Of a stretch of DNA of 64,000 bases, positions 2,725-64,000 are shown in pieces. The first letter of the stretch is position 1. Each line of letters starts with the position of its first letter. This DNA is from Octopus sinensis (lineage: Eukaryota). The stretch spans positions 177,320,001 to 177,384,000 of the forward strand of contig NC_042998.1 of the NCBI RefSeq assembly GCF_006345805.1, read 5' to 3'. The notes below the pieces were generated by a model. That model worked only from the letters and a program-made list of their open reading frames with translations. It did not search any database and was not told the DNA's origin. The translations under genes were made by a program, and so were the position numbers.

Positions 2725-2828
2725 TACATACATTCACACACACACACTCACACACACACACACACACTCTCTCTCTCTCTCACACGCACATACACACACA
2801 CACTCACACACACACACACTCACACACA

Positions 2829-2902
<74 letters not shown>
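2725..2902 (+). repeat. (CA)n compound microsatellite; its (TG)n counterpart is at 3256-3407
   Basis: Direct reading. Confidence 0.97.
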
Positions 2903-2906
<4 letters not shown>

Positions 2907-3255
2907 GGGTTTCATGCACAGTATCTATCAAAGACGTTGGTTGCATAGGGATTGAACTCAGAATGATGTGGTTGCAAAGTGAATTCCTTAACCGCAATGA
3001 TATATTTCATTTAAAGTAAAAATAGTTGAAACACGCGGCTTTAAATTATCTGTTCAGTGGAAAACTGCCCTATTATGGCATCCTTTTCATCGAGTAAATT
3101 GCACCATCTGTTCCTGATGAGATTTGTGTATCATCTTTTATAAAAAAAATTACTCGCGTGCTATTGTTCTCAACGATAGCAATTTCATTTTCTGATTTCT
3201 CAATTAATCCACTGCTAATACACTAATACATCAATAATATATGCAAACAACAAAA

Positions 3256-3308
<53 letters not shown>

Positions 3309-3328
3309 TGTGTGTGTGTGTGTGTGTT

Positions 3329-3411
<83 letters not shown>

Positions 3412-13458: not shown

Positions 13459-13496
<38 letters not shown>

Positions 13497-13498
<2 letters not shown>

Positions 13499-42500: not shown

Positions 42501-45500
42501 CACAGTTCTTTGGCACACACACACACACGCACGCATGCGCGCACACACACACTCTCTCTCTAATTAAAAAGAAATATTCAAAAATGATTGAACGTACAGT
42601 CTGTGTTTGAAGGGACAAAATGAAGTCTTCAACAGCTTCCTCAGTTGTTCCAGACACTGAAAATCAAAAGAAAACAACCAGACATGATATTCAGACATGA
42701 ACATGGGGAATTCAGACTTAAGGTAACATTAAACTACTGGCTGTAGGCTCAATAGCTTGCATCCACTACCTGGTAGTGTGCAACAGCTTCCTAACTTTTA
42801 ATGGCTCACTCCACCAAACAGTAAGCAAGTAGCATGTGATACTAAAACAGGTAAAGCTCACTTATATGAGCAGAGAGAACATAGCTACAAGAAGCAAATG
42901 CTTTGTTAACCTGAAATATTAACTTCAAGTGCTTCTATGGACCTGGATAATTGCATAAAAAACATGTAGACAATTCACCTGTAAGATTACCCAGAATAGT
43001 TAACTCAACAATGACTTTTTTATATGAAAGCAATTTATGAAACAAAGGTTTTTTTATGTAAAAGTTTAGGATCTTTCCCATGCCGGTGGCATGTAAAATG
43101 CACCAATCCGACCGTGGTTGTTGCCAGCCTCGCGTGGCACCTGTGCGGATGGCATGTAAAAAGCACCCACTACACTCACGGAGTGGTTGGCGTTAGGAAG
43201 GGCATCCAGCTGTAGAAACATTGCCAGATAAGACTGGAGCCTGGTGCAGCCTTCTGGCTTCCCAGATCCCCGGTCGAGCTGTCCAACCCATGCTAGCATG
43301 GAGAACGGACGTTAAACGATGATGATGATGATTGTTCTGTCAATATAACAGATGAGTGTTGACATAAATTGCAACAATTCTCCTGCATCATTGATGCAAA
43401 AAAACTAATATCTATCTCTCAAGAATTCTGTAAATACACCATGTCAAGAAATATCTGATCACATTAAAACATTTTTATCTTCTTTACAAAATTCAGTCTG
43501 CTTATCAAATACGTTCATTTTTTACAGTGACTTGAAACATTTTTCAAGAATACATCAACTATAATTAAAATGTAAAGCATACATTTCCTTCTACCTGTGA
43601 TATTGTCATTGCAGAAAAAAATTTGATCATGCATGTAACTGTAATGTCCAGCGACCAAACTGTTGTTAAGGCAGCAACCTTTGATTCACCAATCAATTAT
43701 ATTGAGAAGCCTAAATCCCCTTCTGTCAAGAACATTGAGGTTGATAGTGGATAAACGTTTTCTTGACATTAAAAACTAAAAGTCAAAGACTTGCACAGAT
43801 CATCATAGATCATAATTTCAGAAAGTAGGATAAATATTGTTTATTAAGATCCAAGTTCCATGATAACAAAAGAAAAAAATCTGACCTTGTGCAGTTTCTA
43901 TGGGAGAGAACCGAATACAAACTCCTTTGTCAACAATAGCAGCTGTAATAGCAAGCTGTGGATTTTCTCTGGATAATAAATCAGCCAGCTGAAAATAAAG
44001 ACATAAAATAAGTGCTCCATATATTCAAAATGATGATACTAAAATCCTACCAAAGGAAAACTGCAAAGAAATTAACAATACTGGTTTGTTGGTTGTTTCT
44101 GTGATTAACACTTTGTTCTGCCCTTAAGGAAAGTACATTTTTCTACTTTTCTCAGTCTACTTAGCTGTAAATTAGTCAACTTTCTCAATGAGATAAGCCT
44201 ACAGAGGCCAAACAAAACCCCAATTTTGATGTCAGTTTTTAAACACTTTCTGCATTAATTCAAACAAAAGTAAGAATTTGCAGAACTATCCTACATGTCT
44301 CATATAGCATAGAGAAAAAAGATGTAAAAGCAAATATTCAGACATAAAAAGCTGCAAAGGAAGCAGAAGATTGGAATTAATTTACAAAAGTTTTTTTAAG
44401 AATAAAACTGAATTCAATTAGATTTTAGAAATATTTTGAGCATTTAAAAGAAGACAAAAAAATCTGTTAAATTTAACTAACATTTATTTATTGAGGCATA
44501 AAAGTTTTCAGCTTATGACTGCAACATGATCACTGACTTACTTTACATGTATACATATACATATTTGCTATTTATACATACATAGCAAATGAGGTATGTA
44601 TAAAGTCAAGATTAACTATCATGACATATAAAGGAGATAGGGGAAAGAGGGGAAAATGAAAGAAAAAAAGGAAGGTAGAAAGGGGAAAGAAAAAGTAACA
44701 ATACATACAAATTGCTAAACAGAAAGCAAGAACAGACCTTGAAGTGACTGAAAACAACTAATGTCAAGAAGTCAAGATCAATCAACATATATACAACAGA
44801 CCCCACCCCCCACCCCTTTTCCAGAATGTTCAACAAGAAAAAAAGGAAAAAGATATTTGATGCTGCTCAGAACTAGCCATTAACTAAATTTCAAACAGCT
44901 ACAGTGAAGTTATGCCAGTAACCAAGTCACATTTGTATAAAGTTTTGACACCCCAAGAAATAAATGAAATGTGAATTTAACAGGGTCCTTTTCTTTTTTG
45001 CTCGCTCCCTTCTTTTTTGTGTGTGTGTTTTCTTTTTTTTCTTCATCTTCTTCTCTTTAGATGGATAACATTGTTCCTCCAAATGCAATTGATTCAGTTT
45101 CTGAACAGTTTCAGATCTAATCTCATTAGAGAATTGCAATGACAAAATTTTAAAACATAAAAATTGTTTATGTTTTGTTTTTCTTTTTCTTGTTAATAAA
45201 GCCTATCAACTTCAAAATTTGTTCTAAAATCTTTTTCATTTACATGCTTGAAAAAGAGTGGTGGCAACCAGATGGTGAGAAGTAAGGACAGGAGAACCCC
45301 ACAGGCAGTATGATTTATGATACACTCAGACAGAGTTTCACAATGATATGGTAATGGGTTATGGCTGAGAAAAAATGCTTAATATAAGGACAGTAGATAT
45401 GATGAAAAAAAGAGGCAAGTACATCAAAATTTCTGACAGACATGCGTAAAAGATATCTAATAAGAGTTGATCACAATATTGAAGTAAATGAACTTTCTTG

Positions 45501-48500
45501 GTCAATCACTCATGCATTACATTAAGACATATTTAAAGTCTATTAAAAATGAAATACTGTATTTACTCGTGTATAGGTCGCACTCTAATTTAGTGTTAAA
45601 TATTGTTACAATTTTTTTCTCCTTCATAGGTTTAGCTTTAGCCGCATCAGGGTTTTTTTCAGTTAAAATCAAATAAAATAGTGCGATTTACATAAAGTAG
45701 GTACGGTTAATATGAATTGTTAAGGGAGGTAACTCAATAATCTCATAAATTACTTCCAAGGAAATGCGACATTATGCAAAACGGGATCACGTTTTGGCTT
45801 CAGTAACATAAAAGAATTACTCATTTTGCATCATTAATGTTTTATCACAGAAATATATATGAATGTTTTAACTTCCTGCGCTCCATCTGTAGATAAAATG
45901 AAGTTACAACTATGTACATTGTCTTGCAAGAAACTTCTTTGGTAGCAAATGATCGGATGTTTTTAATAATCTTTACATAAAGAATGCTTTGAAAATACAG
46001 CATATGTTTCCGCTAGTGTAGATGTATTTGCATTAAATATAAGCGAGAGAGGGAGAGAGAGAGGGGGGAGTGAGTGCGAGCATTTCAAAAGTGTTTACGT
46101 TCCAGGGAAATAACTCTTATCAACTTCTTAAACATTATATAGTGTAGATCATGAACTTTATTCCCTTTGATTGGAGTGGTTGACGTTAGGCCTTATTCAA
46201 ATATGAGATCAAAGCAGCTCAAGGTATGTGTTTTGCTTGTTTGTGGGTAGGTTGTGATAATAGACATAAGAGAATATGTTCTCTTTACCATGCATCAATA
46301 CCTGATGTAAGCTAAATTGTTGTTCATGTTTATAGCGATTTAGTATGCATCGGGCCTCCAGTCATACTGGAATACTATCTTTACAAGTCTTTTTTAGTGG
46401 ATATTCATCGGACCTACTTCAATCTAGAATTTATTTTATCAATTTCCATTTGGCGAGAGGTAATTTTTTTTTATTTGACACTAGTCGTGTTTTTTAACTA
46501 GAGGAAGAGTATCACATACTGACAGGGGCACACATAACAAGCTTTCACAGTTTCTAGGTGCCAAATTTCACACACAAGGCCTTGGTCAACTTAAGACTAT
46601 TAGAAAAGACACCTACTGTGTCATGCAGTGGGATAAAGCCTGAAACCATGAGATTGCAAAGCAAACCTCTGCACCAGTAGACATGCATGCATATCATCAT
46701 CATTTAACATCTGTCTTCATGCTGGCATGAGTTGGACGGCTTGACTGAAAACTGGTACGGTGGGAGAGCTTTGGCAGGATGCCCTTCCTAACGTCAACCA
46801 CTCCAAGAATGTAGTGGGTGCTCTTTATGTGCCACCGACAGGGGTGCCAGCTACATAACACCAGCATCAGCCACGACTGTGATCTCACGTGACTTAACAG
46901 GCCTTATTCAAATATGAGATCAAAGCAGCTCAAGGGATATAAGCAACATTAAACACACATACACAAGATATGTGTTTTGCTTGTTTGTGGGTAGGTTGTG
47001 ATAATAGACATAAGAGAATATGTTCTCTTGAACGCACATGGTGTTAAAACGCCTGAAATTCAGACAAGCAATATAACTTGCATCAGAGCCCATTCAAGAA
47101 CAATAGGCATCAACGTTTCATTTTTGTGACTAGTCAATACCACATACCCAAAATGAGGCCTGACGCAAGCTAGCTATCTATGACTACAGCGATTTACCTT
47201 GCATCGATGCCTGATGTAAGCTAAATTGTTGTTCATGTTTATAGCGATTTAGTATGCATCGGGCCTTGTTGAGCAATGTGGTATTGACAAGTCACAAAAA
47301 GGACGAAAAATCTATTGCTTCCGAAAGAGTTCTGATGCCAGTTATCTTGTTTGACTATGACTTCCAGGTGTTTTAACACAAGGTGCATTGAAGAGAATAT
47401 AATCTCTTATGCCTATAAGCGCAGTCTACCCACAGACTAGCAAAACATATACCTTGTGTGTTCCCTCTCTCTCTCTCTTTCTTTCTCTCTCTATATATAG
47501 AGAGAGACAGAAAGACAGGTAAATACTAAAAGCATAGAAGAACCACTCAACATGATGGAAGATGAATGAAAAAGGTTAGCTAAATTTTTGGATAAGAAGA
47601 TGGAGCCTGATAATTAACTGACTTATTATACAAATAAACACACACACAGAGTTATGTACAAGCCTTTAACTAAAGTCAGTAGAGAAAAATACACAATGCA
47701 AAAAGAAAGGTTAGTAAATAGCTATTCACCCCTTATATGCGCTTGCACACACACACCCACACACCCAGGTCTAAAACAATATTTAAAAAAATTTTTAAGC
47801 TCAACTAGAAGGAAATATAAAACTTGAAGAATGGTTGATTCATATGCAATGATAACTTAATGATTTAAAAAATATATTAAAAAAATTATTTCCAAAAAGC
47901 AGTTGATAATCTGTGTTCCCAGAATAGAACAAAATCTTCAAATAACCTCCAAGACAGACAGTTACAAACAAAACTAACACTCAAAATATATTTACCCATG
48001 TATTTAGAGCATCATAATAGGCCAGTTCTTTCTCCTGTTCACTTGATTCTTCAGAACTTTTGATCACATACGGAGTTATTTCCTTTTCTGAAATGTAGTA
48101 TTTCAAAAATCAATGAAATTATTTTTTTTTTTATAGCTAAAATACAATATATTTCAACAATGGCAATTTGATTAACAGAAAGAGAGATCAGAAATGGAGA
48201 GACCAAGGGATACATATTGAGGTACAAACATACGCATACGTCAAGGGACAGCTAGTCTTATATTTGTTTCAGCGATTGGACAGCAGCCATGCCAGGGTAT
48301 AACTTTAAAGGGTTTTAAATCAACCTTTGTATTTATTTTAGTCTGATGCATATTCTATCAGCCCCCTTTTGCTGAACTACTAAGTTACAGGAACATAAAC
48401 AAAGCAACACCAGTTGTCAAAAGGTGAGAAACAAAAACACACACACATACACTTCCACCCAGTTTCTATCTACTGCATTAACTCACAAGGTGTAATTTAA

Positions 48501-51500
48501 TCCCAGGTTATAAAAGAAAACATCCATTAAAGTACCACATTGTGGGACTGAACCTGCAGCACATGGTAGCAAAGCAAACTCCTTAACCACACAGCCATGC
48601 CTAAATCTATATTCATGCTGCAATACTGATACACTCTTAGCCAATTTATATTTGTTTCACATTTTCTATGCTATCTCTCAATGTGCTATAAGAGTAATTT
48701 GAAAATATGCCATTTATTTCCTTTCATTTCACTTGATCTTTCTCATACAGGACTAAATGTGCATTTACTACAACTGGACTGGCTTGTGCTGCTGGACAGG
48801 CTCCTGTGCAGGTGGCATGTAAAAAACATCATTTGAGCGTGGCTGTTGTCAGTACCGCCTGACTGGCCCTCATGTCAGTGGCACGTAAAAGCACCCACTA
48901 CACTCTCGGAGTGGTTGGCGTTAGGAAGAGCATCCAGCTGTAGAAACTCTGCCAGATCAAGATTGTAGCCTGGTGCAGCCATCTGGCTCGCCAGTCCTCA
49001 GTCATATCGTCCAACCCATGCTAGCATGGAAAGTGGACGTTAAATGATGATGATGTTTCTTCCATTACTCTCTCCTCTACTACACTGCTCCCTCAATCAC
49101 TGCTTCTCTTGTTATTCTACCATTCCTTTTACACACACACACACCCTAATCTTTCTGTCATTAATCTAACTTCTATTCAAACTTTTGGTAATGCTGCTTT
49201 GAATGAATGGAAACACAATACAGTAGTGATGACTTTTCACTCTTGAAGGGTATAAAGCAACTTTACTTTTGCTGGTACCGTGATAAAATGCACTCAATAC
49301 ACTCTGCAAAGTGGTTGGCAAATAAGCAAAGACAACACAGGATTGAGAGGGCCTTGTACACATGTGATGCTAATTGACTTCTAAACAAGGAAAGTGCTTT
49401 CATTACTCAGTCAGTTAATATTATGCTGCAGCTTTGATAATTTGTAACAACACTAAGTGGAATCCAAATGAAAATTCATTCTATGAAATTTTGTTTCATC
49501 TTAATAAACCAATGAAATTCTTCAAGCATGGACTATTATAAAAATGTCTCAGATAACATAACTAAATATGATATTACAGTACTCTATACAGTTCATCATC
49601 ATACCAACAATAGTGAGGGTGCTTTGTACCTCATTACTTTCTCTATAGTGACTCTATCCATCTATCGCATGTGAGAAGAGAAAAATAAAAGGAAGAATGA
49701 TGACAAAAGGGTCAGGCTTATGTGGATGAAGAAAGCAATAGCAAAATGAAAGAAACAGAATGATCAGACAAACAGGTTCAATTCCATGTAAATTTGTTTA
49801 AAAAAATCATTACTCTCACCTGCATCTGATTCTATTACTGAATACTTAAAGAGCAGGGTGACAGGATTAGAGTTAATATCCATCTGAAACAATGAGAGAA
49901 GAATTTAGTAGGTTTAGTTGTTTCACAGAGAACACAGCAAATCATGGATATTCAATGAAATACATAGGTTGTATAGAAAAGAAAAAGACGTATGCTTGCA
50001 AGTGGTTATGCCTGCATGTATGCAAAACTGTAATAAAAGCTGTCAACATGTTACGAGGGGCGTTCAATAAGTAATGCCCCTGACCCACTTCCCATAGTAA
50101 TAGAGCAACGAAACTTGGCACAGTTATTAGTCTTTTTCTACATAGGAACCACCCAGAGTTACGCATTTCTCCCATCGTTTGATGCAGCTCTGGAGACCGT
50201 TTTTGTAGAAGACCTCAGCTTGGTCCTCCAACCACGACGTGACTTCAGAAATCAAGGCTGCATCATCTGGGAAACGCTTTCCTTTCAAAAACAACTTCAT
50301 GGCTAGGAAGAGGTGAAAATCAGAGGGTGCAAGGTCAGGAGAGTAGGGGGTATGGGGGAGGAGTTCATAGCCGCATGCCTGTGCTTCTGATCTGGCGACA
50401 CATGAGTTGTGGACCGGAGCGCTGTCCTGCAGGAGGAGGATGCCTTTGCTGATCTTGCCCTGCCTCTTGATTTTCATAGCTTCTCTTAATTTCCTCAAAA
50501 GTGAAGCATAATAGGCTCCTGTAATTGTGGTACCCTTTACCAGGAAATCTGTCATCACTACTCCGTCCTGGTCCCAGATGACTGTGAGCATGACCTTGCC
50601 AGCGGAGGGCTACACCCTTGCCTTCTTTGGAGGAGGTGAGTCACGGTGCTTCCACTGCATTGACTGGGCTTTGGTCTCTGGATCATAGTGATGGACCCAG
50701 GTTTCATCCTGTGTAATCAGTCTTTTGAAAAATTTTGACTCATCTTCTTGGCACATTTCCAAATTCATCCTCGAGCACTCAACGCGTTCTTGCTTCTGGA
50801 AAGGTGTGAGCAACCTGGAAATCCATCTGGCAGACACCTTTTGCATATGCAAATGGTCATGAATGATAGTTTCCACATACCCGGTACTAATCTTGACCTC
50901 ATGGGCTATTTGGCGAATAGTTATGCGTCGATCTTCAAAATGGCAGCCCTCAACTTGACAGAAGGGGGGGCGACCAGATCTGGGAGCTGTTTCCACAGAG
51001 TTCCGACCATGTTTGAATTCACGATGCCAGCGTTTTACAAGGTCATATGATGGGGCATCATCACCATAAGTTACTTTCATTTCATCAAAAGTCTCCCGTG
51101 GTGTGCGTCCTTTCAAATACAAAAATCGGATCACTGCTCGACACTCAACAGGCTCCATTTCACACTTGACTCAGTTCAAACACCTGTCAATCAGAAACCT
51201 CAATTAGCTCAGAGCTGTAATTTGCCACTGAATCTATAGAGATATAAATAATTGCACATGCAAAATTTCAGCTAGATCAAACAACTGCAAGTGGGTCAGG
51301 GGCATTACTTATTGAACATCCCTCGTAGCATAAGTGTTGACAATTCAAAGTGACACAAATCTCTCAAACCTTACCCATCATCTATCCCTGTTATCAAGGT
51401 TTCAGTTTGTACTTTCTCTCTAATGATAATAATCCTTTCCACTAAAGGCACAAGGTGTCAAGGAGGAGGAGGATAAGAATTATTATTATTATTATTTGGT

Positions 51501-54500
51501 GGGAAGGAACTAGTCACTGGTACTTAATTTATCAACCCCAAAAGGATGAAAGGCAAAGTCAACCTCAGCAGAATTTGAACTTAGAACGTGGTGGCAGACA
51601 AAATACCTATTTCTTTATTACCCACAAGGGGCTAAACACAGAGCGGACAAACAAGGACAGACATAGGTATTAAGTCGATTACATCGACCCCAGTGCGTAA
51701 CTGGTACTTAATTTATCGACCCCGAAAGGATGAAAGGCAAAGTCGACCTCAGCGGAATTTGAACTCACAACGTAACGCAGACGAAATACCGCTAAGCATT
51801 TCGCCCGGCGTGCTAACGTTTCTGCCAGCTTGCCACGTTAATAATAATAATAATCCTTTCTACTACAGGGCACAATGCTTGAAATTTTGGAGGTGGATGG
51901 TTAGTCAATTACATTGACCCTCATACTCAACTGGTACTTATTTCATCAACCTTGGAAGAGTGAAAGGGTGATGATGATGATGACTTCGAGCAAAGCCATT
52001 AAGTTTTGAAGAGATAGAGATAGAGTCAATTTAATGAAACCAAAGTATTTTACTGGCTCCTATTTAACTGACTCTGGAGGAATGAGAAGAAAAGTGAGCC
52101 AGGATAATATCTGAACTCAGAAATGAAGAGGGACAAGATTAGAACCTATCAGAATATGAAAGATACCAAGAAAAAAAGAAATTACAAAAAAAGTTGTTTT
52201 TTTTTAAATCAACAAACAGCAGTGTTAAGCATATCACACACACTTTACACTGTACACAGGATGTTTGCTAGGCTAATTCTGGGTCAGAAATCAGCTCAAA
52301 GCATAAATGGAGTTACTTCACAACTCACATGTCAATATTATAATTACTTCAAACACAGAATCAGTTAAAAAGGAAATGTAGATAAGGATAATTTGTAGTT
52401 AGGAATAGTTGCTGTTGCATATCCTTTTGAAGCCAATCCCAATGAAATTGCCTTTGGTTTTCTGATACAAGCTGCTTCTTTTGAAGTTATCTAAATAAAA
52501 ACCAACCACCAAAAATTCCATTCTAATTTACATTCCAAACACCAAAATGATAATGGCATGGTTATTTTACTAAATTCTTAATATTTTCACAAAGCCAATG
52601 TATTTCAACAGAAATATGGTAACAAGAGAGTTAACCGCAGATTAGTCCTAAGTGAATTCATTTATTGAAGTCTTCCAACCATGACAACTCTGTTTTTTAT
52701 TCAGACAGAGTATATCTAGGACTATAACAACCAGTGTCCTTCCTTTAAGGGTTATTAGAGGAAGGTTTAGTTGCTATTTTTGGTCATCCAAGTGACTTTG
52801 TAGAGACATCTTGATTCAAGTTGGGCTTTCTTTTTGTCATTTGTTTTGTTACTTTCAATCAACTAGTAAAGAGGACTTACCATATTTTGCATATCTTTGT
52901 TTTCATCATCTTTCTTCTCTTCATCATCTTGTTTCTTTGCAATATTCTAAAGAATCAGAGATATATACATATATATACATTACTATTCCAGTTAAGTAGT
53001 GATGAATGAATTGTACAGTTGGTCATGCCATACAGAAAGTTCTTTGACAGACTGAGTGGGTATATGTCAGTTACATGGCCCAATCTATACCAGCATGGAA
53101 AACAGTGGTTAGATGATGATGATGACAGAAAGAGAGAAAGGGAAGGAGAGAGAAAAATGCTGCATGTGTGAGAGAATGAGGGAAATTCATGCATATGTAT
53201 GACTATGTGAGTGATGTATGTGTGTGTGAGAGAGAGACAGAGGGAGTGATGTGCATGCCTGAGGCGATGCATGAATATGCGTGAAATAGTCTCCCAGCCT
53301 TTCTTTTTTAAGATGGTAGGCATGGTAGAGGGAAAATTTGGGTGTTACTTCTAGTACACCAATCAACCGCAGAGAGGTTCCTTCATTGATTCAGACAGTA
53401 GCAAGAGGACAAACTAGCACACCAACCATTAAGTTGAATTTGTGTTCAACTCTTAGGCAAGAGACACTATTCCCCCTGCACACAATAGATGTGAAGTGGT
53501 CAAAAATGTGAAACAAAACAAAAAAAGGTTAATTATACAAGACTTACAACAATCTTTATGTTTGGTAAATTTCTTAATTTCTCCAACATTAAATGACACT
53601 GCAAGAAAGAAAAAAGCAGAAAGAGACCAATGAAAATACTGGATTCAGGAAAGTGAGCAACATTAACAAAAAAAAATTGAAAAATATATTTTTGAAAAAA
53701 GTATAAATAAATAAAATGACATTGCATTGTGATAAAATTAAGATAAGCAAAGCACCATCCGATCGTGGCCATTTGCCAGCCTCGTCTGGCACCTGTGCAG
53801 GTGGCACGTAAAAAGCACCCACTACACTCACGGAGTGGTTGGTGTTAGGAAGGGCATCCAGCTGTAGAAACACTGCCAGATCAGACTGGGCCTGGCGCAG
53901 CCTTCTGGCTTCCCAGACCCCAGTTGAACCGTCCAACCCATGCTAGCATGGAAAACGGACGTTAAACGATGATGATGATACTGCTATATTCCTTTGTGTG
54001 TTCAAAGTCCACAATGCTATCACATTTTGAACTTATGATGCACCTAAGACCATCCTGACAGGAAGTGTGGAGAGGAAGAGAGCCAGAAACTGTCAAAGAG
54101 TTTGTGGACTGATGACATCAAAGGATGCACTGAAAACAAGAGGTTGACTGACTGTACGTATGCAGCACAACACAGAGGGAACTGGAGAGTTTTGGCAAGC
54201 TGATCCCTGAACGCAGGCACCTGGCAGAAGTTATCAAGTATGAAATCCTGACATCATATATCAGCCAGCTAATCAATGATACTCTATTCCATTATATTAC
54301 TGGAATACTAGTATAATGAAGGGAATGTAACTTTTATACCCAAACATCTTAGCCACAAAGAAATTTATCTCTCATCTGCTTAACACTACAGAAACTGGAA
54401 TAAGCACAGCACCTATAGATCCTCATCATTAGGAGAATTAATACTACAGTGAACTCAGTTTGCCAATACTTCTTACTTAAAAAGAATATTAAAACCAAAA

Positions 54501-56160: not shown

Positions 56161-59100
56161 AACTGAATTTCTTTCTCAACAACAACTTGTCATTATCGTG
56201 AAAGTCCTTTTTTTAAAGTGTGTATTGCATTGTCTCTATATTGAAAGACATTCAAAACACAGACACACACAAAACTAGATATACACACAAACAACCAAAA
56301 AAATAACAATTTTATATTGTTATATAGTGAAAGTCTTTTTGTTTTTTTTAAAGTCTGTGTTGCATTGTATTGACAGACTTGCACTTAAAATTCCCACATT
56401 TTTAATCAAAACTTGTTGATTAACTATGGTGATAATACTCCCTATCTATCTTTCACACACACTTTCTCTATCTCACTATATTTTTCTGTCAGATGATGAG
56501 ATGTTAAATTATGATAAAGGGCAGAAACAAGTGTCATGTAAGGGAGATACATGGCTCTCACAGAATACAAAGTCAATAAAATTTAATGTCTAAAAATTAC
56601 ATGCTTGATACTTTCTCCTTAAAGACATTAAACTTACATTTATATAATTTTTACCATGGGCCATAGATTTAAATTTTAAATACAATATTTTTATTTATTC
56701 ATTAGTGCAGTAAAATTTGTTTGTTCATTTATAGATTAAGAAGTTAGAAAAGAAGAATAATCACAAAGGATACAATTAACTGTAAGGATAGAATACCCAA
56801 CCATTTTCCCAAATTCACTGTGATACTGTCAGCAAGTATAGGATGTTGTTCTGTTAATGGATCTGCTGTTAGTGTGAGAAATGCTAGACAGTTTCTGAAA
56901 ATATAAATTTTGGGAAAAAAAAGTAATATAATTCTGATCTTAGACAAAGAAAACTTAATTGAATTCAATCTAGATGAAATTCCAGAATGTTAAAGAAATT
57001 TAAAAAGAGCAACTTCGATATAATTTGTTGTGAAGGTGGAATCAGTGAAGGCAAAATGAAGAGTATATGAGAAGTTTAAGAAACTGTAGTCTGACTAGCT
57101 ATAAAATATTCTCTCTCTTTCTCTCTAACAAACTAATACTATCATGAATTGCAAAGGTCTATAGAGCTACTACTGAACACTGGCTTCCATAATGTAAAGC
57201 AAATGAAAGGTAATTCTCTGTGACAACCTACTTCAAAATACTATTTCCAGTTTAAACACTACACATCTTCAAGTTCATATCTTATGAAAGTTGATTTTTA
57301 CCTTTCATTTTTCTAAGCTCAGTAAAGTAATAGCTCATTGGGTTCTCTCAGCTCCTTCTAAATAGATATTTTTCAGACATTAAATAAACATATAAAGCGT
57401 TAATAGAGGGAAGAAACTGCAAGGGTCCTTTATACATCAGTTTAATTCAAGTTTCTGAACACAGGGGTCAATTATCATCATCATCGTTTAACGTCCGCTT
57501 TCCATGCTAGCACGGGTTGGATGATTTGACTGAGGACTGGCGAACCACATGGCTGCACCAAGCTCTTATCTTGATCTGGTAGAGTTTCTACAGCTGGATG
57601 CCCTTCCTAATGCCAACCACTCAGAAAATGTAGTGGGTACTTTTACGTGCCACCGGCACGAGGGCCAGTCAGGCGGTACTGGCAATGGCCACACTGAAAC
57701 ACCATTCCCTCCTCATTGCGGGAGCCAAAACCGTAGCCTCCATGTATGCCATGGAAGCCCCCAGCATGTTAATTATTAATCAGATAAGGAAGAGACAACA
57801 GTATTACTAAAGATACTGAGTGTCTCTAAATAGTTTGAATCCTGAAGTTGGCTGAATATAAGAAATCAATCCAGGTCTTGCAGTTTAGATATACTGTGCT
57901 TAAGCTGATTGTAAAACCATGTTGTACATTTTCCCATGCATTACATGGCTATCTAGAGCATATGGCAGTTATCAAGACACATTACACCTGTTTTATGACC
58001 ATTCTGTTCTTAAGACAGACTTGATCACTATACAAGAGTTTCTTGATTTCTTGAGGTTCGCTTAATATCTTCAACATAGATTGTGCAGCAAACAGCTATA
58101 GAGATGTCTATGGAAATTCTGGTGAGTAGGAACAAATGACATGTGATGAGAGCAATGGCCACTGTTAAGGCAAAAGAAGAAAGAAAAGACAAGAGAGCAG
58201 GCCTTAGGAGATGAGTCTTCACGAATGAAATGACTAAAGTTTATAGATGAACCATGAGAGTTATTTTTGAAAATCTAATCAAATAAAACTCACAATAGGG
58301 TCAGTCTAATATTAACAATAATGACAGTATCAACAATGACACAGCCACTACCTACAATGACGCTATGGACAAAAAAATTTCCAATGGCATGATCTGATGT
58401 TAAATCATAGTAGCCAAAAGCACTGGCAGTGATGATGTCAATGAGTCAGTACCATCATTTCATAAATACATTAAGTAATAATGACATTCTAGACATCCCT
58501 AAATGCAACAGCAGATGCCATTAATGAATGAGGTATAAGCAGTAAAGTTAATCATGAAGACTGGGACCTCTTCAGCAAAACAAAACTGTGCAAGTTAGAT
58601 AAATAAAGATTACAATAATAAAGATTATGTCACTGATATTAACAACAGTAATGGTGATGGTAGATGATGATGATGCTGATTATTATATTGTGCAGTTTCC
58701 AACGTATAACATCTACCACTGAATTAAACAAAAACTCTATAATTAGATCACAGAAAGAAAGTGAAAGGTCAGAATATTCTATAGAAAAGGAACATTTAAA
58801 TATCAGTATCATTATAGTGCAGACATGAAAGCTCTATTAATGGAAAATGTATGGAGTTGAATGTTTCCACTTCAAAAACTGATACAAATAAAAGACTAAT
58901 ATCTGAAAAACTTACCCATCAACATGACACCAAATACCATTATTATTACAAATTTGCCAGAGTTTAATCAACTCATCAACCTGCCCTGTAAGAGGGGTAC
59001 CTAGTTAAAGAGAACAAACATAGCACTTGTAAATATAACACTGCGAATTCATGTATTCAAAGCATGTACTGAAACCCAAAGTAAAGTTAATGTTTGAGAA

Positions 59101-62100
59101 TACTTCAGGATGCTTTGCTAAAAAAAAATCAGTACCACTCCCACTTTATTACTGAGTAATTAAGGATAAAAGGCATTCAGTTTATGAGAAAATATTTTTT
59201 CCAGCATTTTATATACAAAATGTCATTGCAAAAAAGGATATATTTCACTCATTCTAACATGGTAGTTATCTAACTAAACAGGGTTTGCTTTACTTTACAT
59301 TTTTATAGCCAAACGTTTAATGCTTCTCAAATGAGCATTTTACACTTGCATATCTGTTCTTATCAGCAATAAAGTGAAGATGGTTTACATTGTGATCAAA
59401 GGAAATGTGTGAAATGGTATAATGATAACTCTGCCTAAAAATAAAGTGAGAAGATAAGGTTTCTGATGCAATGGAAACCAATTTGATTTGTATATATGCC
59501 TTACAGTGGCATCTGTACAACAGACACTGAATATAGATTCATTATTAAGGAATCTGAGTATTGTCAGTTAAAACTTTACAAATTTTGAAACAAAAATGTA
59601 CTTACTTTCATGCAAAAAGCTAAATTTTTAATTTCTTATGTTTTTATTTTAAACTAAAAAATTTCAAGTCTTTAAACATTTTTAGTGTGAAAAATGCAAA
59701 CATGATACATAGCTATAATTTCAACTAGTTTAAAATGACATAATAATATTGTAAATCTTGTTAATTTCTACATGTTACTAACTCTAGTTTTAGTAATCAT
59801 TTAAAAATGAAAATAGTTAAAAATAAATAATATAATTAAATAAATTATTACTCACCAGCATAAGCAACCAAAAGAACTGGCGTTTTGGCTGCAGCAATAT
59901 CATCTTTTATCAGCTTTTCAAAAATAGTCACATCCTTCATAGATTAATAAAAGAGAATAAAAAAATTAGGGAGAATTGTGAGCATACCAGTAACAAAAAT
60001 ATATATTTGGAAAGAGAATGGTGCAATATCACATTATCAGAAATTGATGATAGATGAAGATACAAAGCAAAGTAAATCAAAAGAAAAATCTGAGATAAAG
60101 AAGTCAAATCAGATTTTAGAAAGCTGGCTACTTCATTCAAAAAGAGAGCTATGATAAGATGAATCTGGTGAGTTAAAAAGCTGAACAGAAAACCATTGCT
60201 CAAATTAAAAAATTGGTCTGTTCAGTATGAAGGAGGTTATCAGCTGAAGAAATTTATTGGCTGTGATATTAACAGAGAATGAATGAGGATAGTTTAACTG
60301 AAAAAAATATTCAGCTTTCATTTCAAGTAGATGGTGTATGCTCACAGAGAAAATCAAAGTTAAATAAAAACAAAAGCATTCGAGACCTTCAATAATAGAC
60401 TGAGATGAATAAAGAAGATACAGTTGTGTTGACTATATTTTGCTGAGGTCATTAAGCACAGGAGCTTTGCAGTAATGATTGATTATAACAATAATGAACA
60501 GTAATAGAATTAGAGAGGTTGTTATACAAGACCAGCCCAACCTATCACATCTTAATGAAAGTGGAAATCAAGTTGATAGGGACAGTGAGAATCAGTCAAC
60601 ACAAGCAACTGCAACCAAGAGTCCTAACTTTTGAGCTGTTCCACAATCCTTTGCAAATTACTTCACATATTTCAAAAGATTCAAAGATAGCACCAGAGAG
60701 TACCAATCTGACACTCCATCACTATAATTATCATTTTCCTAAAACAAAGCTTCAAAAGGTCTATAATTATTATTATTTTCATTTGTAATTCACAGTAAAC
60801 CAAAACTAAAGCTAACATTTTTTATCTGACGAGCTCTGTATAAATTACAAATTCCAAGATATGTTAGTATTTTCTTAGTAAGATAAATTCATAAGAATTT
60901 CAAATATTATACCTTTTCATAACTAAATAACTATACTCATAAGATTTAATAAACATTACATGTGCATAGTTACCCTTAGCATGGAAACAGACAAAACTTC
61001 ACTTCCCCTTAACATATAAATTGATTTTGATAAATTAAATCTCAAATTCTAGAAATTATCTACCCTCTTCTTTTGGAAGTTACTAACAACTGTCATAAGA
61101 ATTTTGTTTTCTTTCTCTAAAAGAGAAATTTCAATTAATAAAAAAAAGTTTCCAGATATGACACTCAGTACAGCATCTCTTATCTTTGTCCAATTTCATC
61201 TCTTATTTTTGTCCAATTTCATACAATTACCCTATTTGAGTTACTTCCCTTAGCTCATTTTAGAAATAATGCAAATTACTAATGACCAAAAATTATTTGC
61301 AACTATTTTTCTATACGTAAAAACCTTTACCAGCTGATGATCATGCCCGCTTGGCTAGACTGTACTGAAGAGATCTGAGAGATCAAATCATGTCTATTGT
61401 CCCTTATCTGCAAAGAGCAGACTTTCCTTCCACAAAGTAGGTAAATTAACTTCAGAGACTAATTCTTAATTTCTTTTAAATTGTTTCCATCTATCTTTTG
61501 AGAATCCAAGCAATTCTTGCTAGGGTTGTTTTCTTTCTCCAATGAAGATAGATGCACATGGCAGTTGGTACATCAACCCTAAACAAATTTAACCACTATA
61601 AAAATTGGTTACAGTGATATTAGTAAAAATTTATGCAAGATATATTTCAATTTACAAAAAAGAAAATGAGAAAAAGAAAAGAGAAACAAAAGTAATAAAA
61701 AGAAGGAAATAGGGGTATGGAGTGAAAAGAAGTAGTGACTACATTAAATAAAGAAATGAAGCAAAAGAAATATATCTTACCATTTTACTGTTAGCTCCAG
61801 AGACAGAGTTACAAGGAACTGTACTGATACAGGATATAGGCAGACCAAGCTGAACAGGTGAGAATAAAAATAAAAATTGTATGAAAGTATTCTGATGTCA
61901 CAATACCTAAGTTTAGTAATTAATAGTTTCTAACACCGGTATAAGGCCACACGTTTGCAGGGGAAAGGAACATCTAAGTGTAATGATTACAACAATTATA
62001 TTACATGAGCAGCAATCTTCGAAGCATGGAGATATGAAAGGGAAAACAACAGACTTCAGTAGGATATGAATAGTCTATTTCTTCCTTTTTATAGTATACT

Positions 62101-63732
62101 TCTTTTAAATTACATCTAAAAATTAACCTAAAGTCTACGCTTGTACCTATCTGTATATGTTTACTAAGTAAATCACTTAGTACCCTTAACCATATTGAAA
62201 ACAACAGCTGTCACTTGCAAGCATGATTTGATAGCATGTGCTATTGTTTTAAGTGTCTTTGTAGTTAAAACAATGGCACATGCTATCAAATCATACTTGC
62301 TTGCAAGTGACAACTGTAGTTTTCAATTTGGTTAAGAACACTAAGTGATTTACTTAGTATACATATACAGATATGTAGTTATAAGCAGACACATACAGCC
62401 TCTCAGACCCACCCATCTTTAACCCAGCAGAACATGAAAGATGGCACAGCTAGGAGACAGGGCTACGCCCGTACTAAGCTTATATTCATTTTCAGCTGAG
62501 TGTAATGAAGTATCTTACTCAAGGATTACAACATGCCACCCAGGAACTGAATCACTGATCAAATGGTAGATAATCCAACAACCCAACCATTAGGCCACAT
62601 GCATTCACATTCTGGCAGATTTGTTTAGTTGGATTGCTTCTATTTTATCAAAATATCCAGTGTCGTAAATTTATACAGAGTTTATACATAGTGAGACTGA
62701 TTCGCAGAATATATTTATTGGCAATTTTTTTCTATCTACTTCTCTTCACTAAAACACTATCAACTCAACAACTAACATCAGTCTTGCCATATAAAAAAGT
62801 TACTCAAGTCATACTAAGGGCCAGTTTCCTGGTTTCATAGCACATAGACTCTCCAACTGGATGGGACACCAGTCCATCGCAGGATTACTCATTTTTGCCA
62901 GCTGAGTGGACAGGAACAACATGAAATGAAGTGTTTTGCTCAAGAACACAGCATGTTGCCCAGTCCAGGAAATGAAACTACAATCTTGCAATCATGAGTC
63001 CAACACCCTAACCACTAAGCCACGTGCCTCTACTGTCTTGTCATAGGTGTAACATCTCCACAGATATTCACTCAACAATGTCTATACTCAGGAAGAAATA
63101 TCATCAACAGCTGCTGGCCTGAAATTTCAACTTGCAACCATTGATATTTTAAAGGGCAATGAGAATTTGGCTGCTCTAGCTATCACTGACTGTGGATCTC
63201 AGCTCAAACTGCTGTTGCTAAGATTTGAGAGTTTGGGTATCATAGATTTAACATAGATATTTCCACACTTGCATGGATGAAAATGAAATTCCTTGAGGCA
63301 GATTTTCTACTGCTGGATGATTTTCTTGTCACCAACACTCACCTATTTCCAAGCAAAGTTTTCCTAACCCATTGAACATAAAACAGCACAAAGGCCAGAA
63401 ATATTTTTCATGCAAGACTGCAAACAACACCACTGGTGGTGATGTTTGTTTACAATTAGTGCACAAAGAGAAAGAGAGAGAGACACACACACACAGATTA
63501 TATATATACACACACATACACACACACACATGTGGCTCTATGGTAAAGAAACTTTCTTCCCAACCACATGGTTTCAGGTTCAATCTCACTGGAGTTATAG
63601 TAGAAGATACTTGCAAGTGTTCCTTATTACAATCCCAAACAAACCAAAGTTTTGTGAATGGATCTGGTGGAGAGAAATTGAAAAAAGTTCATTGTGTGTG
63701 TGTGTGTGTAATTATATATGCCATTGTGTTTG

Positions 63733-63763
<31 letters not shown>

Positions 63764-64000
63764 CTGCTACTAATGAAGCTGTAAGTTGTAACCAAACTAG
63801 TAGAGCAACAACTGACCTGCATACACAAACTTTGTCCAAGGTTTGGAGGAGCAGCAGCACTAAAATAAATCACTGGTGGACGTGAGTACAAGGCCTCAAA
63901 ACCCTCCGTACTGTATTTAGGATATTTCTGATGTAAAGCCAATTTACAAGCCTTCACTAAGCCATCATATTCTTCCTTGTGATAGTAAGCAGAAGCATCA
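25550..64000 (-). CDS. PDXDC1: PDXDC1 orthologue (group II PLP-dependent decarboxylase family), multi-exon, 5' part lies beyond the window end
   Basis: Exon chain with GT-AG boundaries and fully consistent phases. The translation follows recalled human PDXDC1 collinearly (PVIYFSAAA, LGLP..VPCN, WCHVDG, LPLWICLQ, CIRFSP, GLLRQVPLVGSLLNWWSP, KGRTFDLSSG). Recognition is from memory of the family; no search was run. Confidence 0.95.
26328..26753 (-). mobile_element. SINE family A, full length, just downstream of the PDXDC1 26983 donor/stop
   Basis: High similarity to 17529-17948. Confidence 0.9.
26983..27346 (-). CDS. PDXDC1: PDXDC1 exon (364 nt): (G)RIISTETTYKYHMQIQEDSDNAK...TTTTTE(G), acidic low-complexity C-terminal region
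   Basis: gtcacag| acceptor, phase 1. ORF-track 26979..27308. Ends GAA GG|gtgagt; if unspliced it reads GGG TGA (stop at 26979-26981). Confidence 0.9.
28274..28373 (-). CDS. PDXDC1: PDXDC1 exon (100 nt): GLLRQVPLVGSLLNWWSPPPKEVLKGRTFDLSS(G)
   Basis: atttcag| ... G|gtatat, phase 0-1. Matches GVLRQIPVVGSVLNWFSP...KGRTFNLTAG. Confidence 0.95.
29267..29640 (+). mobile_element. 5' fragment of the same maT-like family
   Basis: Begins tacagggtgtgatgggtaaattgtcacc, the same end as 35606-36493. ORF 29499..29714 IMVFGVITSNGGIMPPFIFPQGLRLNTEAYIKCLEEVV. Confidence 0.82.
30165..30257 (-). CDS. PDXDC1: PDXDC1 exon (93 nt): FLETMSERILKGIEEASKDLQRENHERIIQE
   Basis: ttttag| ... GAA|gtaagt, phase 0-0. Matches LLENMTEVVRKGIQEAQVELQKASEERLLEE. 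Confidence 0.95.
31400..31919 (+). repeat. About 520-bp polypurine (GA-rich) tract with higher-order repetition
   Basis: Almost only G/A with scattered T. Recurring gagagagaggagagtga(aa/gt) units. Confidence 0.97.
32412..32530 (-). CDS. PDXDC1: PDXDC1 exon (119 nt): (G)QCADNIACVKFGLITADTEIEELVSLVETVGKQLEESSK
   Basis: atttag| ... AAG|gtaaat, phase 1-0. Matches CLYVGMASDNVDAAELVETIAATAREIEENSR. Confidence 0.94.
33211..33337. repeat. Perfect inverted repeat: 59-bp arms, 9-nt loop
   Basis: 33211-33269 is the exact reverse complement of 33279-33337. Confidence 0.97.
33350..34600 (+). mobile_element. RTE-clade non-LTR retrotransposon fragment (endonuclease C-terminus to start of RT), broken
   Basis: ORFs 33525..33935 and 34100..34513: QIDFIL, QHRLV, IWKLK, TWWWNS, GKAPGPSGIT.EMLK, YKGKGD..NYR. 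Frameshifts, a stop and an internal deletion. Confidence 0.9.
35606..36493 (-). mobile_element. Internally deleted Tc1/mariner-superfamily (maT/DD37D-like) element
   Basis: ORF 35849..36223 KHPANIMVFGVVTSDGSVMPPFIFPHSLRLNTEAYIKC; a shifted frame continues to PPN/DC-PLDY-like text. Imperfect TIR-like ends. Confidence 0.8.
36550..36990. repeat. Perfect palindrome: 220-bp arms, 1-nt centre (36770)
   Basis: Read base by base with no mismatch. Centre is aatttttgac-t-gtcaaaaatt. Confidence 0.97.
37340..37464 (-). CDS. PDXDC1: PDXDC1 exon (125 nt): YIPASWTEKLAELPENGKNDINTLNIELVHKLKSTDSAFSL(G)
   Basis: aaacag| ... G|gtaaat, phase 2-1, open frame, links both neighbouring exons. Confidence 0.92.
38184..38296 (-). 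CDS. PDXDC1: PDXDC1 exon (113 nt): AILDATVSHRKQFRNIVANCENLMLIEMEGYAGLGAI(R)
   Basis: ccacag| ... AG|gtacat, phase 0-2. Matches WSGIGVVR. Confidence 0.92.
40850..41085 (-). mobile_element. SINE family B older copy. Others at about 6710-6880, 18465-18630, 18650-18850, 20260-20410, 31040-31230, 31915-32085, all minus
   Basis: Shared ccccagtactcaactggtacttattttatc..aaaggcaaag..ggaatttgaactcag. Confidence 0.8.
41560..41990 (+). mobile_element. Degenerate L2/Crack-like LINE RT C-terminal fragment
   Basis: ORF 41638..42027 LLFRARRHFSLQQLLAFNKAQIRPTMKYC..QPLIHRCAVSSPCLFYH resembles the LYKAQIRP.MEYC / LSHRR.VASLSLFY motifs. Confidence 0.7.
42598..42656 (-). CDS. PDXDC1: PDXDC1 exon (59 nt): (V)SGTTEEAVEDFILSLQTQT
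   Basis: ttttcag| ... ACT|gtacgt, phase 1-0. Matches VLGTRGEDVDQLVACIESKL. Confidence 0.88.
43886..43988 (-). CDS. PDXDC1: PDXDC1 exon (103 nt): LADLLSRENPQLAITAAIVDKGVCIRFSPIETAQ
   Basis: ttttcag| ... G|gtcaga, phase 0-1. Matches GTCLRFSPLMTA. Confidence 0.93.
46188..47266 (+). repeat. Direct duplication: 46188-46357 is a doubly deleted copy of 46899-47266
   Basis: Three collinear blocks, two identical and one with about 3 mismatches. Confidence 0.93.
46693..46890 (-). mobile_element. SINE family C, inverted copy
   Basis: atcatcatcatttaacatctgtcttcatgctggcatg...gcccttcctaacgtcaaccactcc. Confidence 0.82.
47996..48087 (-). CDS. PDXDC1: PDXDC1 exon (92 nt): KEITPYVIKSSEESSEQEKELAYYDALNTW
   Basis: atttcag| ... 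TGG|gtaaat, phase 1-0. Ends like human DALNRW. Confidence 0.9.
48270..48602 (-). mobile_element. Degenerate SINE family A. Other worn copies near 7343-7500 (+), 39985-40075 (-), 46530-46680 (-), 63530-63700 (+)
   Basis: Remnants of gtgggactgaacc..ttaaccacacagccatgcc. Confidence 0.65.
49820..49883 (-). CDS. PDXDC1: PDXDC1 exon (64 nt): MDINSNPVTLLFKYSVIESDA(E)
   Basis: tgtttcag| ... G|gtgaga, phase 0-1. Aligns with VEDELSSPVVVFRF. Confidence 0.82.
50054..51325 (-). mobile_element. Full-length mariner transposon (irritans/Himar1-like, DD34D), transposase disrupted
   Basis: 37-bp TIRs (50054-50090 and 51289-51325, 2 mismatches) flanked by TA on both sides. ORFs 50610..51158 and 50127..50591 are in the same frame, separated by one TAG. 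Motifs QDETW, LQDSAP, YSPDLAPSDFHLF. Confidence 0.96.
51603..51838 (-). mobile_element. tRNA-head SINE family B (Meta-domain-like core), young full-length copy inside a cluster spanning about 51420-52125
   Basis: Minus strand: gctggcagaaacgttagc..gagttcaaattccgc (A/B boxes), then ggtcgactttgcctttcatcctttcggggtcgataaattaagtaccag, which resembles the recalled MetaSINE/Sauria-SINE core. Confidence 0.85.
52881..52946 (-). CDS. PDXDC1: Probable PDXDC1 exon (66 nt), acidic insert: NIAKKQDDEEKKDDENKDMQNM
   Basis: attctttag| ... ATG|gtaagt, phase 0-0, open and purine-rich. No counterpart in recalled human sequence. Confidence 0.7.
53548..53598 (-). CDS. PDXDC1: PDXDC1 exon (51 nt): CHLMLEKLRNLPNIKIV
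   Basis: ttgcag| ... GTT|gtaagt, phase 0-0. Matches SQRLQESLKKVNYIKIL. Confidence 0.88.
54860..55260 (+). mobile_element. SINE family C, ending 60 bp from the 55320 exon donor. Other + copies at about 29048-29250, 34990-35220, 43078-43332, 48790-49055, 53748-53980
   Basis: Same body and long (GAT)n tail. Confidence 0.88.
55320..55475 (-). CDS. PDXDC1: PDXDC1 exon (156 nt): TLYKCEDTTMAYMAGMNSFNVVSKLSCLPLWICLQSMGYDGIIKRIESSFHL
   Basis: tctag| ... TTG|gtaatt, phase 0-0. Matches TLYKHDDPALTLVAGL...KLRALPLWLSLQYLGLDGFVERI. Confidence 0.94.
56079..56160 (+). repeat. (TATC)n-(CA)n-(CT)n compound microsatellite
   Basis: Direct reading. Confidence 0.95.
56774..56894 (-). CDS. PDXDC1: PDXDC1 exon (121 nt): NCLAFLTLTADPLTEQHPILADSITVNLGKWLGILSLQLI
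   Basis: ttcag| ... ATT|gtatcc (weak donor, placed by alignment length), phase 2-0. Contains the ADS-x5-KWL motif. Confidence 0.88.
57476..57685 (-). mobile_element. SINE family C, inverted copy
   Basis: catcatcatcgtttaacgtccgctttccatgctagc...aatgccaaccactc...ttttacgtgccaccggcac. Confidence 0.88.
58916..59000 (-). CDS. PDXDC1: PDXDC1 exon (85 nt): (G)TPLTGQVDELIKLWQICNNNGIWCHVD(G)
   Basis: actag| ... GG|gtaagt, phase 1-2. Carries the W-x-H-V-D motif of group II decarboxylases. Confidence 0.94.
59856..59934 (-). CDS. PDXDC1: PDXDC1 exon (79 nt): DVTIFEKLIKDDIAAAKTPVLLVAYA(G)
   Basis: tgaag| ... G|gtgagt, phase 0-1. Matches DVAFLEKLIKDDIERGRLPLLLVANAG. Confidence 0.93.
61781..61849 (-). CDS. 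PDXDC1: PDXDC1 exon (69 nt): LGLPISCISTVPCNSVSGANSKM
   Basis: ttcag| ... ATG|gtaaga, phase 0-0. Matches LGLPFPCLCRVPCNTVFGSQHQM. Confidence 0.93.
62148..62373. mobile_element. Imperfect hairpin / probable MITE (about 105-bp arms, 12-nt spacer)
   Basis: 62148-62252 vs 62265-62373, with about 8 mismatches and one 4-nt indel. Confidence 0.65.
62820..63030 (-). mobile_element. SINE family D (tRNA head, CORE-like and V-like segments)
   Basis: Minus strand: gtggcttagtggttagggtgttggactc..ttcttgagcaaaacact..cctgcgatggactggtgtcccatccag. Confidence 0.7.
63817..64000 (-). CDS. PDXDC1: PDXDC1 exon, 5'-truncated by the window: DASAYYHKEEYDGLVKACKLALHQKYPKYSTEGFEALYSRPPVIYFSAAAPPNLGQSLCMQ
   Basis: ORF-track 63712..63957. 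Donor CAG|gtcagt, phase 0. Matches human ...LAKICRLAIHSRY...KPVIYLSAAARPGLGQYLCNQ. Confidence 0.95.

Follow-up and report, generated by a model that had tools for sequence, protein, structure and literature searches.

Human PDXDC1 is, to our knowledge, one of the last proteins of the pyridoxal phosphate (PLP) families without an assigned reaction, and it is usually set aside since the mammalian protein has no catalytic lysine. The question raised by the locus described here is whether an invertebrate orthologue could be a PLP enzyme. The locus is the PDXDC1 gene of Octopus sinensis, most of which is located in a stretch of 64,000 nucleotides (C2:177,320,001-177,384,000, contig NC_042998.1), referred to below as the window. 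It had been proposed from the letters of the window (the original prediction) that this PDXDC1 appears to retain the Schiff-base lysine and the PLP aspartate of the group II decarboxylases, and that it may be a real enzyme. It is found here that both residues are at the expected positions, that the lysine is shared with many other orthologues and is located at one of the most variable positions of the family, and that the aspartate is not the family state. The reading that is favoured, with a probability of about 0.6, is that the octopus protein works like other PDXDC1s and has no need of an internal aldimine formed with this lysine. Some PDXDC1 orthologues have the lysine and others do not, and a single invertebrate copy in which it is present does not on that account qualify as an enzyme.

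The two exons that raise the question are on the minus strand. The exon with the Asp codon (59000-58916; in the gene model (G)TPLTGQVDELIKLWQICNNNGIWCHVD(G)) reads GTPLTGQVDELIKLWQICNNNGIWCHVDG as far as the donor GG/gtaagt at 58916 and ends in GIWCHVDG. The exon with the Lys codon (56894-56774) starts after the acceptor ttttcag/ at 56894, continues as (G)NCLAFLTLTADPLTEQHPILADSITVNLGKWLGILSLQLI, and ends at the donor ATT/gtatcc at 56774; its translation is NCLAF...LADSITVNLGKWLGILSLQLI. The codons of interest are GAT at 58920-58918 for Asp and AAA at 56806-56804 for Lys. The codon and exon positions of the original prediction are therefore correct, and 56774 and 59000 are true exon boundaries.

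The exons of the complete gene were first located by tblastn with a human PDXDC1 probe, on which no conclusion is based, and were remapped with P0001, a database cephalopod protein that is 97-98% identical to the product of the window gene. Mapped in this way, the gene has 21 exons (extended coordinates 81276 to 26979), all with GT-AG junctions and with a reading frame that is open throughout, until the stop codon at 26981-26979. Two more 5' exons are found upstream (C2:177,425,190-282 and C2:177,456,364-576), giving a total of 23 mapped exons over ~110 kb, 18 of which are inside the window. There is one such locus in the whole 2.72-Gb genome. The Pfam profile PF00282 matches P0001 with 47.7 bits (the curated cut-off being 27), and it matches the Asp and Lys exons when these alone are spliced (E=2.2e-4). 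The two PDXDC1-like central domains are recognized in P0001 with 83.8 bits (PF22930) and 127.8 bits (PF22937), and the exons that encode them are mapped in the window. The motif LRQVP.VGS..NWWSP...KGRTF.L, whose columns are invariant or nearly so in the family alignment, is present near the C terminus as GLLRQVPLVGSLLNWWSPPPKEVLKGRTFDLSSG. The closest named relative is the PDXDC1 of Argonauta hians, with 89% identity over the catalytic region, and in a maximum-likelihood tree of 72 taxa, which follows the species tree, the window gene is found in a cephalopod clade (100) inside monophyletic molluscs (99). Clearly, the locus is an intact, single-copy PDXDC1 orthologue, an ordinary member of a known and already annotated family, and on this point the in-frame exons, the three domains and the tree placement agree with what had been predicted. 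In the protein, a group II PLP-decarboxylase fold that has degenerated is followed by the two central domains specific to PDXDC1 and by the conserved C-terminal motif.

These data also bear on the explanation that the two exons are relics, or that Lys and Asp occur by chance in a copy that has decayed, for which it can be said that the introns are rich in repeats and contain one dead mariner element. However, the 21 exons examined all keep the frame, have canonical splice sites and contain no stops, and they are 97% identical to the congeneric protein; the gene is the sole copy in the genome, and its identity to Argonauta stays high. A pseudogene or artefact is therefore very improbable, being effectively refuted by the intact 21-exon frame and the single locus.

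The positions of Lys and Asp with respect to the PLP-binding residues were examined by searching all PDB chains with P0001 (phmmer) and with a profile of 55 family sequences (hmmsearch). The matches are group II PLP decarboxylases only (8zpi, 4rit, 4obu, CSAD, GAD65/67, DDC and HDC), with E-values as low as 1e-28. The segment ADSITVNLGKWLG aligns without gaps with ADSITFNPQKWLY and ADSISWDAHKWLF. The Lys segment ADSITVNLGKW pairs with ADSITFNPQKW (4rit, 8zpi) and ADSISWDAHKW (4obu), such that the Lys falls on the column of DDC Lys303, the K of NPQKW and DAHKW in these three structures. The Asp segment WCHVDG pairs with WFHVDA and WFHIDG, such that the Asp falls on the column of DDC Asp271, the D of HVDAA. 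The predicted fold is in agreement with this. In an AlphaFold2 model calculated from the family alignment the predicted local distance difference test score (pLDDT) of the catalytic core is >90, residues 371-390 included, and every one of the 50 Foldseek matches listed is a group II decarboxylase, at target-normalised template modelling (TM) scores of 0.58-0.68. As judged from these alignments, there is true homology between the octopus Lys and the Schiff-base lysine, and between the octopus Asp and the pyridine-N1 aspartate, of the DDC/GAD-type enzymes. The assignment of the two residues to the PLP-lysine and PLP-aspartate columns is thus borne out by the solved decarboxylases, and misalignment of the Lys with the DDC/GAD lysine, the finding that would have spoken against it, is not observed.

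One of these structures deserves a separate remark. The best PDB sequence match, 8zpi, is deposited as 'diaminobutyrate-2-oxoglutarate transaminase EctB', but its sequence has the group II decarboxylase motifs GGSLAN, HVDAAYGG and NPQKW and aligns with decarboxylases. The deposited name may be wrong for this chain.

The variability of the Lys column is seen when the relatives of the octopus protein are compared. The set used for this and for the other columns discussed below consists of the 114 relatives of the first search, scored over 286 residues of the catalytic region. At the Lys column these have Lys (21), Ser (20), Pro (19), Thr (13), Val (13), Arg (6), Gln (6) and ten other states. Its entropy is 3.28 bits, which makes it the 11th most variable of the 286 columns, and it is flanked by an invariant Ser and an invariant Trp. 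Mapping of the residue on a tree, as had been suggested with the prediction, gives 31 changes on the 72 taxa (rank 12 of 285, median 14) and 11 changes within the 36 mollusc rows (rank 25 of 285, median 4), parsimony on a quick tree being a rough measure of rate.

All 21 sequences with Lys are from molluscs, including all four cephalopods, scallops, oysters, unionids, venerids, Gigantopelta and heterobranch snails. Other molluscs have Arg (Solemya, Mytilus, Lottia, Patella), Thr (Littorina, Pomacea, Dreissena, Mya and one Babylonia copy), Pro (Nucella and the second Babylonia copy), Asn (Haliotis, Bradybaena), Ser (Liolophura, Candidula) or Val (Batillaria), and the changes of the Lys within the molluscs are to Arg, Thr, Asn, Ser, Pro, Val and Ala.

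The sampling was extended by two profile searches. A profile-seeded search, considered for its best 8000 candidates, brought in no deep branches, its additions being limited to cartilaginous fishes and a small number of other vertebrates. When 1.84 billion representatives were searched exhaustively with a profile, 279 relatives were obtained at E<=1e-30, and the residues were read in the best 150 of these 279, among which ten further sequences with Lys are found. In the Cnidaria, Lys is present in the corals Oculina and Desmophyllum (NISKW) and in the anemone Actinostola, and in the Amoebozoa it is present in Cavostelium (NFSKW), Stenamoeba and Protostelium; one more Lys-bearing sequence groups with the hydrozoan Clytia in a tree of 126 rows. 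Other residues are found at the Lys column in the calcareous sponge Sycon (Ile, with Arg at the Asp column), Trichoplax (Asp), the ichthyosporean Chromosphaera (Ala), Dendronephthya and Clytia (Arg), Actinia (His), Helobdella (Ala), the nematodes (Ser or Leu), and the insects and crustaceans (various residues). Lys is thus absent from the one sponge identified, from Trichoplax and from all non-mollusc bilaterians sampled. Among 30 representatives looked up by name no demosponge PDXDC1 sequence is identified, Sycon being the one sponge found. On the 126-row tree there are at least 14 switches between Lys and other residues. The idea that the Lys is peculiar to the octopus copy does not hold, as it is found in all four cephalopods, most bivalves, heterobranch snails, some cnidarians and three Amoebozoa.

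Lys is probably the ancestral state of the PDXDC1 family. Repeated losses have followed, in a gene that has otherwise remained conserved and single-copy; such an ancestral state is expected because the family descends from a true decarboxylase. For the molluscs, a single regain on the stem of the group and a history with at least five additional losses are the two options under parsimony, and the lability of the site prevents a choice between them. Most likely, the octopus Lys has either been left over from the ancestor or been acquired again, at a position that is no longer constrained in the family. Because the Lys column evolves almost freely, finding the Lys in a single invertebrate copy is at best weak evidence of an enzyme.

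It can also be considered that the Lys, being ancestral to the whole family, is still functional wherever it has been kept. The lineages with Lys (the molluscs including octopus, several cnidarians and the Amoebozoa) would then still form the PLP aldimine and be active, and the Lys-less orthologues of vertebrates, arthropods, echinoderms and others would be independent pseudoenzymes or non-covalent users of PLP. This is considered doubtful. If true, the octopus or scallop protein would be the right entry point to the long-sought PDXDC1 reaction.

The Asp column has a different pattern. Glu is found in 102 of the 114 relatives and Asp in five, such that a carboxylate is present in 107. The sequences with Glu include those of the Amoebozoa, the cnidarians, Argonauta and the two other cephalopods. 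Asp is found only in the window gene, P0001, Ruditapes, Bradybaena and Tachypleus, and later also in Cyprideis, and the carboxylate has been lost in insects, nematodes and Sycon. An association of Lys with Asp, when sought across the sequences, is not found (both residues in 2, Lys only in 19, Asp only in 3). Because Glu is the family state, and is also present in the sister octopod Argonauta, the octopus Asp is derived, as a recent and conservative change from Glu. The aspartate can therefore not be described as retained, as had been supposed.

The remainder of the PLP site differs more strongly from that of the catalytic enzymes. The residue numbers of DDC used here (His192, Thr246, Lys303 and so on) are those which we take to be established for the pig and human enzymes. 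The ring-stacking His (DDC His192, in the motif S-x-x-x-H-S-S) is replaced by Pro in octopus (CCT, 63849-63847), as shown by the ungapped alignment of YFSAAAPPNL with YISDQTHSSV and FASEAAHTSL when compared with 8zpi, 4rit and 4obu. Across the 114 relatives this column has Arg (56), Pro (18), Lys (11) and Tyr (11). The second Thr of the G-T-T motif (DDC Thr246, at the O3' of PLP) is also Pro in octopus (AGTP versus AGTT; Thr ACC 58998-58996 followed by Pro CCT 58995-58993), and it is Pro in 96 of the 114. The His or Gln that precedes the Lys (DDC His302) is Gly (GGA, 56809-56807), in agreement with the original prediction; this Gly is shared by 94 of the 114. In the octopus motif N-L-G-K, compared with the canonical N-P-[H/Q]-K, the Asn is therefore kept (AAT, 56815-56813), with Pro changed into Leu and His/Gln into Gly. 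The phosphate-binding turn GGS/SAS aligns to E-Y-D-G (E/D-R-E/D-G in the family; EEYDG turn, 63966-63961), although 8zpi is the one PDB alignment that reaches this region and the alignment confidence is lower here. The segment of the mobile catalytic loop, as counted from the alignment, has 31 residues in 96 of 115 aligned sequences and 46 in 4rit; its shortened counterpart in octopus is in exon 55475-55320 (TLYKCEDTTMAYMAGMNSFNVVSKLSCLPLWICLQSMGYDGIIKRIESSFHL). HMMER places a Tyr of this exon (TAT, 55442-55440) on the column of Tyr333 of 4rit (DDC Tyr332), beside gaps, and this Tyr is found in cephalopods and Lingula only. At least three other PLP contacts are gone in every member of the family. 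The neighbours that are invariant are the His close to the Asp column (CAT, 58926-58924), the D-S pair and the Trp.

This pattern is the basis of the favoured reading, in which the octopus protein works as its orthologues do: the Lys is widespread but unconstrained, and at least three other PLP contacts are gone in all members. The function would be carried by the invariant positions, being W-x-H-x-[E/D]-G, D-S-x-T and W-x-G, together with the central domains and the C-terminal NWWSP motif. The Lys would be dispensable, and canonical PLP catalysis would be absent. The step from the presence of Lys and Asp to a real enzyme is weakened accordingly by the lability of the Lys column even in molluscs, by the missing equivalents of the stacking His, Thr246 and His302, and by the shortened loop.

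Several observations weigh against this reading. The Lys is kept in four of the four cephalopod sequences, in most bivalves and in heterobranch snails, and some lineage-specific constraint on it is possible; the rough nature of the rate estimate is to be kept in mind here. The carboxylate column is well conserved, and the adjoining His, the D-S pair and the Trp do not vary, which hints at a maintained ligand pocket that could still take PLP. The octopus protein also keeps the Asn of the N-x-x-K motif and has a Tyr at the column paired with the catalytic-loop Tyr. Furthermore, Pdxdc1 of a sponge is reported in a 2026 preprint to rescue bas-1 and tdc-1 mutants of C. elegans partially (10.64898/2026.02.14.704838), such that some orthologues may be real decarboxylases.

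The same observations are the strength of the main rival, in which octopus PDXDC1 and the other Lys-bearing PDXDC1s would bind PLP as an internal aldimine, with the Asp on N1, and would be working enzymes, perhaps aromatic amino-acid decarboxylases with an altered chemistry. In its favour, Lys, Asp and Asn are on canonical columns of an intact, confidently modelled fold, the Lys is probably ancestral, given its occurrence in Amoebozoa and Cnidaria, and has been kept in all four cephalopods, the carboxylate and the invariant residues next to it are conserved, and the sponge rescue data of the preprint point in the same direction. However, the Lys column is among the fastest evolving ones, even inside the molluscs, the equivalents of the stacking His, Thr246 and His302 are absent, the loop is truncated, and the Asp is a recent substitution and not a retained residue. 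Moreover, in Sycon, which is the only sponge for which an orthologue was identified, the Lys and Asp columns are occupied by Ile and Arg, respectively, and any activity in Sycon would therefore not use this Lys. From the sequences, a PLP enzyme of this kind is unlikely, although it is the principal competitor of the favoured reading.

A further possibility is that the conserved W-x-H-x-[E/D]-G, D-S-x-T and W positions bind a small molecule, PLP or another one, without a covalent bond and with a role in sensing, storage or regulation, and that the Lys, where present, may form an incidental Schiff base without an essential role. This would agree with the near or complete invariance of the positions lining the pocket, as opposed to the free variation at the Lys, the stacking His and the Asn, with the carboxylate in 107 of the 114 relatives, and with the single-copy conservation from Amoebozoa to vertebrates. 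On the other hand, the invariant residues could be purely structural (in the dimer interface or the core, for example), and the carboxylate column itself has been lost in insects, nematodes and Sycon. A pocket of this type is considered improbable, and the favoured reading, in which the Lys is dispensable, is retained.

The other exons in the window, all on the minus strand, are as follows. The first one, 63817-64000, extends to 64006, just beyond the window, and reads ...FPDASAYYHKEEYDGLVKACKLALHQKYPKYSTEGFEALYSRPPVIYFSAAAPPNLGQSLCMQ; it contains the EEYDG turn and the Pro at the stacking-His column. It is followed by the exons 61781-61849 (LGLPISCISTVPCNSVSGANSKM) and 59856-59934 (DVTIFEKLIKDDIAAAKTPVLLVAYA(G)), which precede the Asp exon. 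Downstream of the loop exon are 53548-53598 (CHLMLEKLRNLPNIKIV) and 52881-52946, which encodes an acidic linker (NIAKKQDDEEKKDDENKDMQNM). The central domain PF22930 begins in exon 49820-49883 and is followed by the exons 47996-48087, 43886-43988 (LADLLSRENPQLAITAAIVDKGVCIRFSPIETAQ) and 42598-42656. The second central domain, PF22937, is found at exon 38184-38296, after which come 37340-37464, 32412-32530, 30165-30257, the exon with the C-terminal motif (28274-28373) and the last coding exon (26979-27346), which includes the stop codon. The C-terminal exon 28274-28373 ranks with the best conserved parts of the protein family, several of its columns being invariant, and the motif is outside every named Pfam domain, with a moderate AlphaFold2 confidence. 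It may be that this motif counts for more in the function of PDXDC1 than the decarboxylase-like site.

Several repeated elements are also found in the window. A degraded mariner/Mos1-type transposase is located in a PDXDC1 intron (50130-51170, minus strand), with one open reading frame (ORF) that matches HTH_48 (E=2.4e-9) and, next to it and in a different frame, a second ORF that matches the DDE part of Transposase_1 (E=1e-16); as the two parts are in different frames, the coding frame is broken. A similar-looking fragment at 13566-13886 has no Pfam match. A dispersed repeat of ~190-220 bp, resembling a short interspersed nuclear element (SINE), has at least eight copies with 74-88% identity, all in PDXDC1 introns or downstream of PDXDC1. 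They are located at 57480-57700, between the Asp and Lys exons, and near 24.6, 29.1, 43.2, 46.8, 48.9, 53.9 and 55.1 kb, and a spurious ORF translation, '...LDALPNANHSE.VVGAFTCH...', recurs because of them. Long dinucleotide microsatellites, (TG/CA)n and (TA)n, are found at 2740-3460, 400-1100, 13380-13570, 63330-63800 and elsewhere, and are seen as CVCV, HTHT and YIYI runs in the six-frame translations. In a genome scan with PF00282, the same profile segments are matched at least three times within ~170 kb at C3:52.29-52.46 Mb, outside the window, which suggests that at least three canonical group II decarboxylase genes are arranged there in tandem; more PF00282 loci are found on C14, C6 (two) and C17.

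In the literature, human PDXDC1 is listed as 'unassigned' in a vitamin B6 database paper (PMC2748086), and the human and mouse proteins were dropped from a screen of PLP enzymes for want of a conserved catalytic lysine (PMC11016064). The Pdxdc1 of the sponge Spongilla lacustris has been proposed as a broad aromatic decarboxylase (10.64898/2026.02.14.704838), and a second preprint makes the same claim; the lysine is discussed in neither of them, and the former does not state which residue Spongilla has at the Lys column. No paper was found that maps this lysine across PDXDC1 orthologues, and a literature search for PDXDC1 as a pseudoenzyme or a cofactor mimic found nothing. A useful result is the map of orthologues with and without the Lys. 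Having the Lys is typical for a mollusc, and the change to Asp is minor and derived. The naturally matched orthologues with and without Lys, some of them within one mollusc class, would allow a direct test of whether any PDXDC1 uses PLP covalently.

When compared with vertebrate PDXDC1 (the family of human Q6P996, for which fish, shark and tuatara sequences were examined), the octopus protein is a one-to-one orthologue with the three Pfam domains and the C-terminal motif in common, and in both the stacking His is replaced, the equivalent of Thr246 is Pro and the equivalent of His302 is Gly. The named fish, shark and tuatara sequences read WLHVEG and DSMTLTPGPWLG, in support of the Glu and Pro given for human PDXDC1 in the original prediction, and one further database sequence reads CDSMTMTPGPWLGL. 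In the vertebrate proteins the Lys column is occupied by Pro or Gln and the Asp column by Glu, whereas octopus has Lys and Asp; in octopus the N300 column is Asn and not Thr, and the acidic, low-complexity N and C termini are longer.

With the catalytic group II decarboxylases (DDC/AADC, GAD65/67, CSAD and HDC, and the bacterial structures 4rit, 4obu and 8zpi) the octopus protein shares the fold, at the TM scores given above, and the W-x-H-V-D and D-S-x-x-x-N-x-x-K-W motifs, with Lys and Asp at homologous columns. It differs from them in having Pro for the stacking His, Pro for Thr246, Gly for the His/Gln before the Lys, probably the acidic E-Y-D-G instead of the GGS/SAS turn, a catalytic loop that is ~15 residues shorter and ~450 extra C-terminal residues with the PDXDC1-specific domains. 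Spongilla Pdxdc1 is, according to its authors, a one-to-one orthologue of human PDXDC1 (10.64898/2026.02.14.704838), and hence is in the same orthologue group as the octopus gene; for the sponge protein a partial rescue of decarboxylase mutants in vivo has been reported. The Lys-less PLP-fold proteins AZIN1/AZIN2 and SPTLC1 are a precedent for PLP folds that are kept in non-catalytic or accessory roles. These belong to other fold families and lineages, and in PDXDC1, unlike in these proteins, the Lys is not uniformly lost but polymorphic among orthologues.

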